64,000 bases of DNA, taken from sequence record OP310984.1. One strand, 5' to 3'. Below, piece by piece: positions 3,604 through 57,762 of this stretch. Position numbers and translations under genes: made by a program. The stretch's first letter is position 1; each line of letters starts with the position of its first letter. Below the pieces are notes generated by a model. That model had not been told where the DNA came from. It made no database searches and saw only the letters and a list, made by a program, of their open reading frames with translations.

Positions 3604-3657
3604 TTTCTATTTTTCCTAATCATTAAGTTTTAATAAGTATCCAATATAGATACATGT

Positions 3658-23109: not shown

Positions 23110-26100
23110 TTAAATAACAGCACCTTTGGAAACTATCCAGTTAGTACCATCCCATAAGAGGGTAAGAACTGTTTTAGTATCACCTAGGTCATCTACTATT
23201 ACTGGAGTACCATTGTTCCATTGTAACACTGCACTAGAAAGTGTTGGCATAGCTACCTTACCAAGCAATACAAGAACAGCTGTGATCATACGATCAACAG
23301 GTCCATTCTCTAGTGTAATGGTTTGGTTAGCAGCAGTTTGAACCCTATAGCACTGTTGGTTAGCTGGTGTTAGAGTTAAAGCTGTACCAGTGAATGTACT
23401 TGATTTTAGGCTATATGCATCGAATGATTTATCTAGCTTCTTCCAAGTAATATTAGTACCAGTACGGCTACGTAGCCAATCACCATCAGCGGTTACATCA
23501 TTATTCGGCCCTTGGAATAGAGTCCATGATTTAGCCGCAGCATTACGTAGGAATAGTTGTCCACTAGTAGCATCAGCTTGATCAACTATAATAGTTACAG
23601 GTGTCCATTTAGAACCACTAGCTGTTTTCTCACGTACATAGTTAGTGCCATTAGCACCTTCACTAGGTACTTCACCAATAACTGCGGCTGGTACAGCTAC
23701 CCATTCACCATTTTGCATACCCATTAGAGTATCATCGGTTTGCAGAGGTGCTACATCAACCCAGTTACCAGCTACACGACCTTGAGGCTTAGTAGCTTGT
23801 GCAGTATCGCGTACTACATCTGAAGGAATTTCTGGGAATGTAATGGTAGCCCATTCAGTTTCACCCCCTGCAATACCTTTACGAACGTATTGTGCATTAA
23901 CAACTGGACTAGGTACAGCATCAATGGCAGGTGTTGGTAATTCAATAGCAGTCCATTCAACAGCCCCGTCAGCGGTTGCTTTACGGCGACCATAGAAGAC
24001 ACCTACTTCAGCATCTACCACCTCATCAACAGGTAGTTCAGTCCAACCGAGTTTGTACCGAACCATTTTCTTATCGACATCTTCTGGATCGACTTCACTA
24101 ACTGGAACTGACATTAATTTGTAGAATACAACCCAGTTAGCATCTTTATACCAAACGGTACCAGTTTTGTCGATACACCAGTCACCACGATTACCATCGA
24201 TAGAAGTGGGTGCAGTTTGACCTTCAGGTAGAATTACCCAAGAGGATCCACGTTCACCTTTCTGACCGGTTTTACCAGGGATACCTGGAACACCTTGTTT
24301 GCCCTCAGGACCTTCAGGACCCTGCGGACCCATGGCTAAGACACCTAGGCTTTCCCAAGTAAATGTACCTTCAGTATCGATACTTACAAATACTTCTACT
24401 TGTCCTTCAGTATTGGTGCGAATGGCAATACCTTTACCTACGTTATCAGCAGATGCTACTGGTTTACCAGCATCATCACCAACATAGATAATTAATAGAC
24501 CACCACCTTGTTTACCTTCAGGACCTTGTGGGCCTTCGACACCCTGGATACCCTGCTCACCATTTAGATTAATTGGGCCGATATAGCCATCAATTTCCTG
24601 ACCTTGGTAAGTATAGAGCATTGTACCTTCGTTAGTTTCAACCCAGTATGAATCACCAGTTACTAAGTCAGGATCAGTGTCTTTCTTTGGTAGTTGTGAA
24701 GCATCGGTTAAAACACCTTTAATGTTTAAACCTTCACCCGGTTTACCTTGCGGACCTGCCATAATACCAATGCTAGTCCAGCGACTACCGTCCATGTTAA
24801 CAAATACTTCGCCCGTGGACTTAACAGTATATGCTTTCCATTGGTTATCGGCAAGTGCTTCTGGTGGGGTATCTTCAGGAGTGTCAATCGCTGCGATGAT
24901 CTGGATAGGTTCACCAGCGGGACCTTGTGGGCCTTCTGGTCCCTCGGGTCCTTCTGGTCCCTGATCACCGTCTTTACCAGGTGCGCCATCTTCACCTTTA
25001 GGACCTCGATGTGTACCACTATTTACCCAATTACCATCTATCTTAACAAATAAGGTAGATGTGTCTTGTGTGAAGTACGCTGCCTGATCAGGAGCATCTG
25101 CCGGCAGGGCTGCCTCATTGGCAACAGCACCAGTAATAACTACGTTCTTACCATGTAGACTGATTAACCATTCACCCTCAGTACCAGTGAAGCCATTGTC
25201 CAATGCTACTTGGAAAGCCGATTTACCTTGTGCCCCTGGTTCACCAGGTAGACCTTGTTCGCCATCTTCACCTTGCGGACCTTCAGGGCCCTGCGGGCCA
25301 CGGAATGAACCCATGGCTGTCCATGAGATATCAACAGTCGGATCTTGGCCAGTCAGTACATAAACCGTATTGGTGGAACGTACTGAAACACCTTGGTATT
25401 GTTCTACACCAGTGGTGGTTAATAGATCATCAGCAGTTTCAACTGCTTTAACTACTTCTAAGTTACGACCTTGTGGACCAGGTTCACCTTGTTTACCATC
25501 GGGACCCGGATCACCTGTATTACCTGGTTTACCTTGTGGGCCCTCAGGGCCTTGGAAAGTACCTAGGTCTGACCATGCCCCTTTTACAAAGATGAATAGA
25601 TGTTCTGGTTTACCAGCTTCCATAGTAACTAAGTATGCTTCTGATTCTTTAGCTACAGATGGATCAGGTAAATCAGCTGGTGATGGTAGTGAATCCTTAA
25701 TGGTAAACGGCATTGCTGGTTCACCCTGAGGACCTTCAGGACCAATTTCACCATCTTTACCTTGCGGACCTTCAGGGCCCTCAGGTCCACGTTCACCCTG
25801 TGGTGTAACTGGGAACCAATCATAGTCATCAATAGTTGGATTCTCTGGCGGATTATTACCTGAGATAAGCATCCACGCCCAGAGTTGATTATTCCATGAG
25901 TAAGCATCTCCAGGTTTATTACTTTCAGTCTTAGGTAATTCTAAGTTATTAGGCCAACGACCACGGATAACCAGACCAGTACCATCTGGACCACGAAGTG
26001 AACCTGTTTCAACCCAACGACCTTTTACAGGGGGATCTTCATTACCTAGCGGTGATTCCCATACCCATAGCCGATCTTCAACGAACCAAGCATCACCGAC

Positions 26101-26391
26101 ATTATGCGTATCTAATGGTTTAATATCTTGTTCGAATGTTGCTAGATCAACATTAGCGATAATGTTAATAGCCGGACCAACTGGGCCAGGGGGACCTTGA
26201 TCGCCATCTTTACCCGGCTGACCATCTTCACCCTTTAATCCAGGTATAGTAACAGGATCAACGAAAGTGGTATTAAGACCCACCCCGGTAGAAACCGGGA
26301 TGTGTCCATTAACTACAGAAGTGGGTTCATCAATTGATGATACCCGTTTGGGGAGTTCCCCGTTTACATAATCTTCAAATGCAGAAGCCAT
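23110..26391 (-). CDS. gp146: Collagen-like virion fibre protein
   Basis: 1093 aa; many G-P-x triplet tracts alternating with ~70-aa globular repeats. Confidence 0.85.
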   Translation of the reverse strand: MASAFEDYVNGELPKRVSSIDEPTSVVNGHIPVSTGVGLNTTFVDPVTIPGLKGEDGQPGKDGDQGPPGPVGPAINIIANVDLATFEQDIKPLDTHNVGDAWFVEDRLWVWESPLGNEDPPVKGRWVETGSLRGPDGTGLVIRGRWPNNLELPKTESNKPGDAYSWNNQLWAWMLISGNNPPENPTIDDYDWFPVTPQGERGPEGPEGPQGKDGEIGPEGPQGEPAMPFTIKDSLPSPADLPDPSVAKESEAYLVTMEAGKPEHLFIFVKGAWSDLGTFQGPEGPQGKPGNTGDPGPDGKQGEPGPQGRNLEVVKAVETADDLLTTTGVEQYQGVSVRSTNTVYVLTGQDPTVDISWTAMGSFRGPQGPEGPQGEDGEQGLPGEPGAQGKSAFQVALDNGFTGTEGEWLISLHGKNVVITGAVANEAALPADAPDQAAYFTQDTSTLFVKIDGNWVNSGTHRGPKGEDGAPGKDGDQGPEGPEGPEGPQGPAGEPIQIIAAIDTPEDTPPEALADNQWKAYTVKSTGEVFVNMDGSRWTSIGIMAGPQGKPGEGLNIKGVLTDASQLPKKDTDPDLVTGDSYWVETNEGTMLYTYQGQEIDGYIGPINLNGEQGIQGVEGPQGPEGKQGGGLLIIYVGDDAGKPVASADNVGKGIAIRTNTEGQVEVFVSIDTEGTFTWESLGVLAMGPQGPEGPEGKQGVPGIPGKTGQKGERGSSWVILPEGQTAPTSIDGNRGDWCIDKTGTVWYKDANWVVFYKLMSVPVSEVDPEDVDKKMVRYKLGWTELPVDEVVDAEVGVFYGRRKATADGAVEWTAIELPTPAIDAVPSPVVNAQYVRKGIAGGETEWATITFPEIPSDVVRDTAQATKPQGRVAGNWVDVAPLQTDDTLMGMQNGEWVAVPAAVIGEVPSEGANGTNYVREKTASGSKWTPVTIIVDQADATSGQLFLRNAAAKSWTLFQGPNNDVTADGDWLRSRTGTNITWKKLDKSFDAYSLKSSTFTGTALTLTPANQQCYRVQTAANQTITLENGPVDRMITAVLVLLGKVAMPTLSSAVLQWNNGTPVIVDDLGDTKTVLTLLWDGTNWIVSKGAVI

Positions 26392-29809: not shown

Positions 29810-30343
29810 TTAACTTTCTAGATAACGGATTTGACCATTTTCTAGATAACGTGCTGCGCCATTCTCTAATAGCCGGATAGTATCTGATGTATCATCAATA
29901 CGTTGAATTAGTATATTACATTCGCCATAGTAAGCATAACTACTCGACATAGCTACTATCGTGTATGGAACAACATCCGTAGTTGCATTGATTGGTGTTG
30001 TATCAAATGAAACATCATCTGGTCCAAGCTTCCAACCCCGTGAACGGTTGATTTCTTCAGCAATTGCTTTAGGTGTTAAAGTACCAACTATCTTAAGGAT
30101 AGATCCTTCACCAATAGCTCGTGGATCAGCAAAATCTAACCGACGGTAAGTTAACATGTACTTAATGTCAGTAGTAATGTCGATCATTTCAATAAATGTA
30201 CGTCCAGGCTCAATCGTGGTTGGACTAAAAAACATATCTTCAAATGTAACTGTTTCTGGTTTGAAGTTTATTTTTAAATCATCCCGCGCAAGTTTTACTA
30301 GCGCATTCCTCGATGCCATGTCATACGGAAAGATATCCTGCAT
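29810..30343 (-). CDS. Virion structural protein with C-terminal RxLENG repeats (gp143 position)
   Basis: 177 aa ending RLLENGAA-RYLENGQI-RYLES. Confidence 0.75.
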   Translation of the reverse strand: MQDIFPYDMASRNALVKLARDDLKINFKPETVTFEDMFFSPTTIEPGRTFIEMIDITTDIKYMLTYRRLDFADPRAIGEGSILKIVGTLTPKAIAEEINRSRGWKLGPDDVSFDTTPINATTDVVPYTIVAMSSSYAYYGECNILIQRIDDTSDTIRLLENGAARYLENGQIRYLES

Positions 30344-55399: not shown

Positions 55400-55408
55400 C
55401 AACATAAA

Positions 55409-55428
55409 GCCCTCCCCGAAGGGAGGGC
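55409..55428 (-). terminator. Terminator of the major capsid transcript
   Basis: Minus strand GCCCTCCC-TTCG-GGGAGGGC-TTTATG. Confidence 0.85.
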
Positions 55429-55437
55429 CTATGTCTG

Positions 55438-55518
55438 TTACTCTTCTAACTTCCGGGCATTACCGTCTTCCAAATAACGGATAGTCCCATTTTCTAGATA
55501 ACGGTAACCCTTTCCAGC
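55438..55518 (-). other. In-frame 26-codon extension after the capsid UGA (putative readthrough domain)
   Basis: AGKGYRYLENGTIRYLEDGNARKLEE then TAA, in frame with gp120 and inside the transcript. Confidence 0.7.
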
Positions 55519-57762
55519 TCACGGCTTAAGATCAGCAAGCTTACCGTTGAACTGAGTTTCGCCCATGACTTTCTGGAAGCCAGTGATCTTGAACTCTAGT
55601 GCGAACGGAATGTTGTTGACGTGTAGGTTGAACGGAATGGCCGCGATTTCGCGAGTAACCTGGTGACCACCACGGGTGATCGGTAGGTCAGCGATAACAG
55701 TAGATACGTAGAAGAACTGACCCCAGGAGAGGATGTCGTTTTCTTGTTGTACTGCGCGGGTCGGAATTACAACTAGCTTACCATCGAATAGCTGGTTGTT
55801 GGTGGAAACGATATCGTACTTGAGATAAGCACCTAGAGTACGGTCGTCACCTTTAGTCATTAGATAGTTAGCAATCTCTTTGTCGGAGCAGAAGAGATAC
55901 ATCGGAGTTTCATCCTGGTTACCGGAGATAACACGGAAGGCAGCTTCAATGTTGGAATCACGGTGAGCCGGGAATAGCTCAGCTTTAACACAGTTTAGGA
56001 TCGCAGCGCAAACGTCGTCCCAACGATCTTTAGACTTGATGGTGTCGATGACTTTCTCAAGATCTAGTTCTTTGTAACGATAGGTCGGACGCATTACAGC
56101 GGATAGTGCACCTTCGATGATACCAAACTTCGGACGGTTGTAACCATTGTGTACAACTTCACGTAGTTGAGCAAGGTAGTTAAGCATGCGCTTAACAGCG
56201 TTGTTGCTGTTACGGATGTTGGTGTTAACGGTTAGAGCTTTAACAACCTCACCCGGACCTTCATCGGTCATGGTGTCCATCGGTAGAGTTACAGGAGCGT
56301 GCATCGGGATCGGATGACGGAACTGTAGTGCACGGGTCTGTAGTAGGTGACCACGCTGACGACGGTTGGTGTTGGTGAAGCGAGTATCTAGTTCGAAACC
56401 GATAACAGCTAGGTCAGTTAGCTGATCTAGAATAGCTTTAACAGCCGGGTCAGCATTATCCATTACTTGACCATCTTCGTTTAGAACTTTATCGACGTAA
56501 GTGTCGGTAGCACCAAACTTAGAATCGCCTTTGGATAGGCTGATAGTACCGCCGAAACCAACGCTTAGACGTAGGCTTAGTTTAGCAGTCTTAAGGTCGT
56601 TAATAACGCCATCAGCTGAACCGTCGATGAAAGTGGTATCGCCACTAACAACAAGGTCATCGCTATCGAAACGGATAACTGCGTTCCGGGTATCACCAAC
56701 TAGATCGGGCTGGAACACAGCGCGAGGTAGACGGTCAACCTTGAACTTAACAACTTTACCGCCGAGTAGAACGAATAGGTTCTTTAGACGACCAGCCGGA
56801 TCAATGGTGTCAGAAACTTCAAGCATGCCACGCTGAATGAGTAGGTTAGCATTGGAGTTACCCATTAGATCAAGACGTACGTTCGCTTTTAGCGGAGCAG
56901 TAGTGATAGTTAGGTTCTGCTCGTTCTTGATGGTGTACGGAGGAACAAGAGCCGGGTCTACGAAGAAGTCAGCATTGGAACCAGCCGGATCTAGGGCAGG
57001 AATTAGTGCAATGCTTTCGTCGTCGAGGATGGAAGGATCACGATAGGCTTCTACCATGTTCACTTCTTCGTTATCCATCTTAACGCCGGATACTTCGTGG
57101 TAAACGTCTTTCATTACAGCGATGTAAGGAAGAACCTGAACAACACCACCTTCAATCGGGTTGATAACGGTGGTCGGATAGATACGCTCAGCGAATTCAT
57201 CCTGACGGCTAGCAGCTAGGTTATAACCAATAGTTACAACACGGAAATCACGCTGTGACTTCTCGTTATAGTTCTCTAGGCCAACACCATTTTCGAATAC
57301 TTGAATGCCACCAGCAGGGCCATTGAACTGATGCTGTACAACCTTAACATGATCTTCATTAGAAGCTTTAGCTTTGGTAATACCACGTAGTGCACGGATA
57401 TATTTAGTTTCATCAGCACAGGCGATAGCAGCCATGGTAGCAGCAGTGATTTGGTTCTCACGGACACGTTCTTCACGAGCACGTACTTGAGGATCACTGG
57501 AACTTACTCGTTCGAAACCATAGTCGTTAACGAGCATTTGCATTTTGTTATAAATTGCAGCAGCATCTTGAATGTCGGTAGCTTGCACGGTACCGAAGTT
57601 TTCATGTGAAATGCTGCTAATAAGGGAACGACCTTGACTAACAACGCTGTCATTTAGACCAATTTCACTTTCTAGGCGGCCAATGAAATCTTCCATTGAG
57701 AAGACTTCGTAATTCTTTTCGCCTTTGTGTTTAAACAGTTCTCTTAGGGCATGTACGCTCAT
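55519..57762 (-). CDS. gp120: Major capsid protein precursor
   Basis: 747 aa; recognised phiKZ gp120; GLE/N maturation site at 163/164; strongly biased codon use. Confidence 0.95.
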   Translation of the reverse strand: MSVHALRELFKHKGEKNYEVFSMEDFIGRLESEIGLNDSVVSQGRSLISSISHENFGTVQATDIQDAAAIYNKMQMLVNDYGFERVSSSDPQVRAREERVRENQITAATMAAIACADETKYIRALRGITKAKASNEDHVKVVQHQFNGPAGGIQVFENGVGLENYNEKSQRDFRVVTIGYNLAASRQDEFAERIYPTTVINPIEGGVVQVLPYIAVMKDVYHEVSGVKMDNEEVNMVEAYRDPSILDDESIALIPALDPAGSNADFFVDPALVPPYTIKNEQNLTITTAPLKANVRLDLMGNSNANLLIQRGMLEVSDTIDPAGRLKNLFVLLGGKVVKFKVDRLPRAVFQPDLVGDTRNAVIRFDSDDLVVSGDTTFIDGSADGVINDLKTAKLSLRLSVGFGGTISLSKGDSKFGATDTYVDKVLNEDGQVMDNADPAVKAILDQLTDLAVIGFELDTRFTNTNRRQRGHLLQTRALQFRHPIPMHAPVTLPMDTMTDEGPGEVVKALTVNTNIRNSNNAVKRMLNYLAQLREVVHNGYNRPKFGIIEGALSAVMRPTYRYKELDLEKVIDTIKSKDRWDDVCAAILNCVKAELFPAHRDSNIEAAFRVISGNQDETPMYLFCSDKEIANYLMTKGDDRTLGAYLKYDIVSTNNQLFDGKLVVIPTRAVQQENDILSWGQFFYVSTVIADLPITRGGHQVTREIAAIPFNLHVNNIPFALEFKITGFQKVMGETQFNGKLADLKP

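Follow-up and report, generated by a model that had tools for sequence, protein, structure and literature searches.

A conserved candidate readthrough extension of the phiKZ major capsid gene and an overlapping hairpin that may stimulate it

Recoding at the end of a major capsid gene has been described in phages. In Q-beta (Allolevivirus), the UGA of the major capsid gene is followed by an in-frame extension, and decoding of this UGA, presumably by near-cognate tRNA-Trp, yields the extended minor capsid species A1, an established product. To our knowledge, no dedicated 3' hairpin has been established for Q-beta. Likewise, in phages T7 and T3 (10A/10B), recoding where the major capsid gene ends gives a minor product with a C-terminal extension. 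Structures 3' of a recoding site are known from eukaryotic viruses, such as the MuLV gag-pol pseudoknot after UAG and the stem-loops that follow UGA in alphaviruses and coltiviruses, and from bacterial -1 frameshifting in dnaX, in IS elements and in phage tail chaperone genes. The spacer between recoding site and structure is 8 nt for MuLV readthrough and 6 nt for dnaX frameshifting. We know of no structure-stimulated near-cognate readthrough that has been established in bacteria.

We analysed a 64-kb stretch of DNA (the window), which is assigned by its sequence to a phiKZ-type Pseudomonas jumbo phage. PhiKZ serves as the model of jumbo phages that form a nucleus, and although a near-atomic structure of its capsid is available, the extension described below has stayed unannotated. 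Our main result is a conserved, unannotated candidate readthrough extension of the phiKZ capsid gene, together with loss variants in which the gene ends in TAA. The locus resembles the Q-beta arrangement in that the UGA of a phage major capsid gene precedes an in-frame extension, and it resembles the eukaryotic viral signals in that a stable structure, kept among relatives, begins about 8 nt past the candidate leaky stop codon and overlaps the extension.

The capsid stop codon and the reading frame beyond it

The plus strand of phiKZ corresponds to the minus strand of the window. Over the 571 bases around the hairpin, the window matches KTN4 and several further isolates at 100% identity and phiKZ at 99.3%, and the capsid ORF shows 99-100% identity to phiKZ-type phages, where it is annotated as the major head protein PHIKZ120. 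The features of the gene end, and a related module elsewhere in the window, are the following.

55519-57762, minus strand: major capsid protein gene, orthologue of phiKZ gp120, 747 aa, ending in TGA (ORF list and protein identity)
55519-55521, minus strand: leaky-stop candidate UGA, next base G (TGA in 22 of 22 sequences with the extension, TAA in 2 of 2 without it)
55511-55518, minus strand: purine-rich 8-nt spacer GCUGGAAA between the UGA and the stem (from the sequence; length constant in 10 aligned clade-A relatives)
55441-55518, minus strand: candidate readthrough extension of 26 in-frame codons with three octapeptide repeats, R-x-L-E-D/N-G-x-x (translation)
55438-55440, minus strand: second stop, TAA, closing the extension 7 nt before the terminator stem (translation and terminator scan)
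29810-29893, minus strand: paralogous three-repeat module of gp143, the ordinary C terminus of a virion protein, used as a control (sequence match to the extension)

Relatives were gathered from GenBank phages (Phabio, 201phi2-1, PhiPA3, phiHQ, PA1C, RVTF4 and Viktualia), 18 IMG/VR contigs and 7 metagenome contigs. A second, profile-based scan of IMG/VR returned the same 18 loci, the metagenome scan added only four informative loci, and the capsid stop of Noxifer stands outside the tallies, its capsid gene lying beyond the 35 kb examined. Twenty-two distinct sequences keep the extension. They fall into clade A, with phiKZ, PhiPA3, phiHQ/PA1C, Phabio, 201phi2-1, Viktualia and five uncultured contigs, and clade B, with RVTF4, Psa21 and nine uncultured contigs.

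In every one of the 22 sequences, the capsid gene ends in TGA and is followed by a homologous in-frame three-repeat peptide of 26-30 codons, whose second stop sits just ahead of the terminator. No in-frame stop occurs inside the extension in any of them, and the other two frames are interrupted in 22 and 18 of the 22. Extension lengths are 78, 81, 84 or 90 nt, so that all indels are multiples of three. Pairwise differences within the extension are concentrated at the third codon position, both in the phiKZ clade (0.47 versus 0.34 and 0.26 at the other two positions) and in the second clade (0.33 versus 0.20 and 0.21). The capsid stop is TAA in the two close relatives that lack the extension (protein identity 75% and 70%); in these, the structure has gone along with the extension and the TGA, and the terminators are retained. 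They are metagenome contigs, RCUK01000188.1 (L050) and WPCG01019508.1 (L052), and can be used as controls in the form of natural loss variants. A short remnant of the 3' end of the extension persists before the terminator in L050.

TGA is not the default stop codon here, because the long ORFs of the window end in TAA 30 times, in TGA 10 times and in TAG 6 times. The base after the capsid UGA is A in 15 and G in 7 of the 22 sequences and a pyrimidine in none; UGA followed by A is a leaky context in E. coli. Within the 64-kb window, the other TGA-ending ORFs have no conserved-looking extension and ARAGORN found no tRNA gene, so that a genome-wide stop-codon reassignment or a phage suppressor tRNA is unsupported there.

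Immediately past the UGA stand rare, purine-rich codons. Of the 10 aligned clade-A relatives, 8 retain the rare Gly codon GGA in the spacer, and clade B usually has AGG or AAG-GG; neither GGA nor AGG occurs in the capsid gene itself. The motif after the UGA also has a Shine-Dalgarno-like appearance (GGAAAGGG, AGGAAU).

The repeat module of the extension recurs as the C-terminal end of small virion proteins of the gp143 family, encoded at 29810-30343 (minus strand) in the window and including Phabio_216 and Noxifer_141, both annotated as virion structural proteins. The gp143 gene and the capsid extension have a 17-nt exact stretch in common (CGTTATCTAGAAAATGG). In an AlphaFold2 model of gp143, pLDDT is 86 overall and 66-71 in the tail, and the core of the model resembles chain 9xqd_0 from the outer peripheral region of the phiKZ baseplate (E 8.8e-7, TM 0.59-0.69, 19% identity). 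A Pfam search with gp143 gave only a weak match to DUF7941 and a PDB sequence search gave none; searches of Pfam and PDB with the extension itself returned no match. The tail common to gp143 and the capsid extension may be a shared docking motif. Together, the conserved coding extension linked to TGA, the loss variants with TAA, the stop-codon usage and the gp143 module indicate that the extension is very likely translated by UGA readthrough.

The cryo-EM model of the phiKZ capsid includes gp120 up to residue 747, and neither an extension nor extra density is reported (PMC11297242). Because the C-terminal arm of gp120 lies on the outside of the capsid, where it contacts gp244 at the vertices (PMC11297242), a tail appended to it would be exposed on the surface, and the extended capsid protein would be a minority species. 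We also considered the 330 unidentified capsid chains of the cryo-EM structure as the outer C-terminal tail and rejected them, since they are located on the inner capsid surface.

The extension peptide is present in 62 GenBank records, none of which annotates it as part of the capsid gene, and we found no report of it in the published literature on phiKZ, be it on readthrough, ribosome profiling, proteomics or a gp120 3' element. In Viktualia (L028:1478-1576) and HPP-Temi (L072:254-397), small hypothetical ORFs are annotated in other frames across the capsid stop and the extension; these are probably false gene calls, made because the extension went unrecognised. The capsid genes of RAY and RTH11 end in TAA and have no extension. 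The distantly related capsid gene of the Escherichia phage Goslar (NC_048170.1, L055:986-1120) also has TGA as its stop, with A as the next base, and the frame stays open for 28 codons, as far as the terminator; the peptide encoded there bears no relation to the phiKZ extension and lacks the octapeptide repeat, and an open stretch of that length has a random chance of about one in four. Elsewhere in the window, at 24282-26244, numerous diverged direct repeats have a plus-strand sequence rich in GGACC/ACCTT, which fits minus-strand coding of collagen-like Gly-X-Y repeats.

Fold, conservation and codon choice of the hairpin

The structural elements downstream of the capsid UGA are the following.

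55455-55510, minus strand: 56-nt hairpin, 8 nt past the capsid UGA (MFE -24.7 kcal/mol, z -5.39)
55500-55510, minus strand: 5' arm of the outer stem, GGG plus UUACCGUU (clade-A consensus structure, covariation)
55455-55467, minus strand: 3' arm of the outer stem, GACGGUAA..GCCC (clade-A consensus structure, covariation)
55468-55499, minus strand: apical part with two inner helices and a loop, specific to the phiKZ type (pairs between copies of a repeat with a 24-nt period)
55407-55430, minus strand: intrinsic terminator of the capsid transcript, G+C-rich stem and U-rich tail (terminator scan)

A first-pass annotation had proposed a 56-nt hairpin after an 8-nt spacer, and its coordinates, strand, spacer and length all agree with the sequence. 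The fold that it had drawn by hand, a stack of three helices in one irregular stem, was reproduced as the minimum free energy structure at -24.7 kcal/mol, except that the loop is the 6-nt GACUAU instead of CUA and that the outer stem has an extra U-G pair. The hairpin is also more stable than chance would give, with a z-score of -5.39 against dinucleotide shuffles, none of 200 of which reached its stability. In a 161-nt context, the fold is unchanged and stands beside a separate intrinsic terminator. The hairpin itself was ruled out as an intrinsic (Rho-independent) terminator, because the sequence 3' of it, GGAAGUUAGAAG, contains no U tract; the scan puts the terminator at 55407-55430. In Rfam, no family matched the hairpin, and only sub-threshold matches driven by the terminator were obtained. 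The capsid terminator is a member of a family of elements of about 30 nt each, located at 2204, 3705, 8167, 17793, 23069, 42935, 55399 and 60055 of the window, with the lead-in ACAUAA or ACAUAG, the stem CCCUCCC...GGGAGGG and the tail UUAUG. Positions 3653, 4169 and 55359 carry a promoter-like repeat that includes TATATTAC.

In all 11 clade-A sequences, GGG at +9 to +11 closes a hairpin that measures 56-62 nt and is either the MFE structure or within 0.8 kcal/mol of it, with energies from -18.3 to -26.4 kcal/mol. RNAalifold retained only the outer stem, GGG/CCC plus 7-8 more pairs, in which 91.7% of cells are paired, compared with 43-60% when the partners are slid against each other. Four pairs of this stem show compensatory change, and its covariation score of 0.287 (0.146 in shuffles) was reached in none of 500 shuffles, a statistic that ignores shared ancestry and thus overstates the significance because the sequences are phylogenetically related. 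For example, the third base of a Gly codon, which can be U, A, G or C, covaries with the middle base of the opposite Tyr, Phe, Leu or Ser codon. At this Gly position, 8 of 10 sequences use GGA or GGG, both of which are absent from the capsid gene. The closing CCC is constant, and the encoded residue varies among Ala, Pro and Ser. The apical part is not conserved, since pairing across clade A reaches only about 50% of cells in the two inner helices seen in phiKZ.

Clade B folds differently, with CCGG/CCGG from +7 around CCGUC/GACGG, followed by a GGUACY/RGGUACC hairpin. As many as 98% of its cells are paired, and the sequences hardly vary, hence almost no covariation is seen. Where an invariant residue of clade B has a paired third codon position, the codon is invariant in 5 of 6 cases, including Pro CCG and Arg CGG (CGG makes up 1% of the Arg codons of the capsid gene); where the third position is unpaired, this holds for 1 of 4, and the capsid-gene baseline is about 20% of comparable columns. 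The stem thus begins 8 nt past the UGA in the phiKZ clade and 6 nt past it in the second clade, with different topologies. The covariation named as a check in the first-pass proposal is seen in the outer stem of clade A; the inner helices are unconserved, and clade B is nearly invariant. These data provide moderate evidence for selection at the RNA level on the hairpin region, and the conserved feature appears to be a stable stem with its base 6-8 nt past the UGA, not a particular loop.

The hairpin had also been put forward as evidence independent of the peptide repeat. Both inner helices, however, arise between two copies of the direct repeat CGUUAUYURGAARAYGG, through the self-complementary UCUAGA and through pairing of AAUGG with CCGUU. 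The R codons and the D-G codons of the repeat are mutually complementary, and in the outer stem Tyr-Arg codons are paired with Asp-Gly-Asn codons. The hairpin is therefore not a priori independent of the peptide repeat. The claim fails for the inner helices, which are repeat-derived and unconserved, and is tenable for the outer stem, which is conserved with compensatory changes.

Synonymous recoding was used to estimate how much structure the peptide alone would entail. For the phiKZ stretch from UGA to TAA, recoding with window-wide codon usage gave -15.0 +/- 3.8 against -28.3 for the native sequence (z -3.47), and 1 of 1000 recodings was as stable. Across all relatives, recoding with the usage of neighbouring genes gave a mean z of -2.30, negative in 22 of 22, and recoding with uniform usage gave a mean z of -2.02. 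As a control, we took 11 tails of the gp143 family, in which the same module lies in an ordinary coding context; here the mean z was -0.30 under synonymous recoding and -0.18 under dinucleotide shuffling, and the energy per nucleotide was -0.232 kcal/mol, compared with -0.311 for the capsid extension. This control is the most informative one, since the gp143 tails show no such excess, and it places the additional structure with the capsid extension and not with the peptide.

With the codon usage of the capsid gene as the null, the native MFE is unremarkable (z from -1.5 to +0.9 over 19 relatives), a result that would make the hairpin a pure by-product. We set this aside as the main null because capsid usage is extreme, with CGT at 79% of Arg, GGT plus GGC at 100% of Gly and CGG, AGR, GGA and GGG at about zero, and because the codons of the extension are closer to genome usage. 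The extension freely employs GGA, GGG, CGG, AGG, CGA and CTA, and its codons in phiKZ fit window-wide usage over capsid usage with a ln likelihood ratio of +9.0.

Alternative readings and the proposed mechanism

The hairpin could be an unselected consequence of the complementary codons of the peptide repeat and of the palindrome UCUAGA, which is formed here by its Leu-Glu codons, with any readthrough set by the UGA and its context alone. The direct-repeat origin of both inner helices fits such an origin, as do the comparable MFE obtained by recoding with capsid usage, the unlike fold topologies of the two clades and the tail of phiKZ gp143, which makes the same inner hairpin. Yet excess structure is missing from the gp143 tails as a group (mean z -0.30, compared with -2.02 in the extension), the outer stem covaries, an xCC-C triplet is kept as the residue shifts among Ala, Pro and Ser, and several of the codons GGA, GGG, CGG and AGG, near-absent from the capsid gene, stand at paired positions of the extension. 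The gp143 control and the covariation weaken this explanation, which we regard as improbable, though it is the strongest of the alternatives. Slightly less probable is a role at the 3' end of the transcript, in which the hairpin and the terminator would shield the abundant capsid mRNA from exonucleases or give rise to a small RNA derived from the 3'UTR, with no bearing on how the UGA is decoded. The two stems do stand right before the 3' end, and phiKZ offers a precedent in the two-stem RNA of about 100 nt from the 3'UTR of PHIKZ298 (PMC8545117). Against this role, the region is protein-coding by its signature and its peptide is common to gp143, Rfam gave no match, and L050 and L052 have lost the structure with the extension and the TGA but keep their terminators.

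The structure might instead act after readthrough, by slowing ribosomes within the extension or limiting their arrival at the second stop, or it might even lower readthrough. The rare codons GGA and AGG right after the UGA and the position of the second stop, merely 7 nt from the terminator stem, are in line with such tuning; nothing specific speaks against it, and sequence analysis alone does not separate it from stimulation. We hold it to be an outside chance, below either of the preceding two explanations. Far less credible than any of these is selenocysteine insertion at the UGA through recruitment of SelB by a SECIS element, a possibility that had been raised with the original hairpin. 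In its favour, a hairpin does come after the in-frame UGA, and the G that opens its apical loop lies 32 nt past that codon. Loose prediction of bacterial SECIS elements allows 16-37 nt, a range that includes this distance. The apical stem-loop, on which SelB would act, is the non-conserved part, with only about half of the clade-A cells paired and hence no conserved apical structure at a fixed distance from the UGA, whereas the base of the stem is the conserved part; since, in addition, clade B folds differently and Rfam gave no match, a SECIS element is very unlikely.

The reading that we prefer is a selected hairpin that overlaps a real coding extension and acts as a stimulator of UGA readthrough, and we give this full mechanism a probability of about 45%. 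It is favoured because the 6-8 nt spacing matches that of known recoding structures and because the UGA is followed by A or G. Both a candidate leaky stop with a conserved extension (22/22) and a stable structure 5-9 nt past that stop, as would be looked for in a readthrough stimulator, were found. According to this mechanism, most ribosomes would terminate at the capsid UGA through RF2, and a minority would decode it, most simply with near-cognate tRNA-Trp. Readthrough would append a tail of 26 residues with the three R-x-L-E-D/N-G-x-x repeats, and the product would be a minor capsid species that carries the tail on the outer capsid surface. Because the base of the hairpin begins 8 nt past the UGA, it would sit at the mRNA entrance when the UGA occupies the ribosomal A site, and there the hairpin would most likely stimulate recoding by biasing the competition between RF2 and tRNA. 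Production of the extension, its level, the identity of the decoding tRNA and a positive effect of the stem on readthrough are all inferences. A slightly more tentative generalisation is that phiKZ-like jumbo phages use programmed readthrough of the capsid UGA, promoted by a hairpin without SelB, to place a few octapeptide-repeat tails on the capsid, as on gp143.

If the extension is made, a minor subunit of the phiKZ capsid has gone unrecognised, one whose surface tail also occurs on gp143, and the presence of this tail on both proteins would suggest that they bind the same partner. A hairpin that drives readthrough would make the locus a tractable bacterial model of a recoding mechanism whose characterisation has so far come from eukaryotic viruses. 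Should the whole reading hold, bacterial systems would gain their first described case of near-cognate readthrough stimulated by a structure, and a hidden component would come to light in the capsid of an intensively studied model phage.

Comparison with described recoding systems

In outcome, the proposed mechanism would come closest to Q-beta A1, with T7 10A/10B also close. Q-beta is nevertheless a 4-kb ssRNA phage whose extension is a domain of about 200 aa, in contrast to a tail of 26-30 aa in a 280-kb dsDNA jumbo phage, and A1 is an established product, whereas the extended phiKZ protein is a predicted one. Decoding of the UGA by tRNA-Trp would be a feature in common. The T7 and T3 proteins share with the proposed product a minor, C-terminal extension of the major capsid protein, but they arise by -1 frameshifting and not by stop-codon readthrough.

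In mechanism, the closest counterparts would be the 3' structures of eukaryotic viruses and the bacterial frameshift hairpins. The targets of the viral structures are eukaryotic ribosomes and eRF1, and in MuLV a pseudoknot is required; at the phiKZ locus, a bacterial ribosome and RF2 would face a simple irregular hairpin of which only the base is conserved. Bacterial -1 frameshift hairpins likewise lie 5-9 nt downstream, at the mRNA entrance of a bacterial ribosome, but work together with a slippery heptamer, unlike the phiKZ extension, which is in the zero frame and needs no slippery site. Bacterial SECIS elements are also hairpins immediately 3' of an in-frame UGA; they present SelB with a conserved apical loop or bulge at a fixed distance, in contrast to the phiKZ structure, whose apex varies and whose stem base is conserved. 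The phiKZ case would thus differ from all of these systems as a near-cognate readthrough signal that acts on a bacterial ribosome, in a dsDNA jumbo phage, and overlaps the coding sequence of a repeat-peptide tail.
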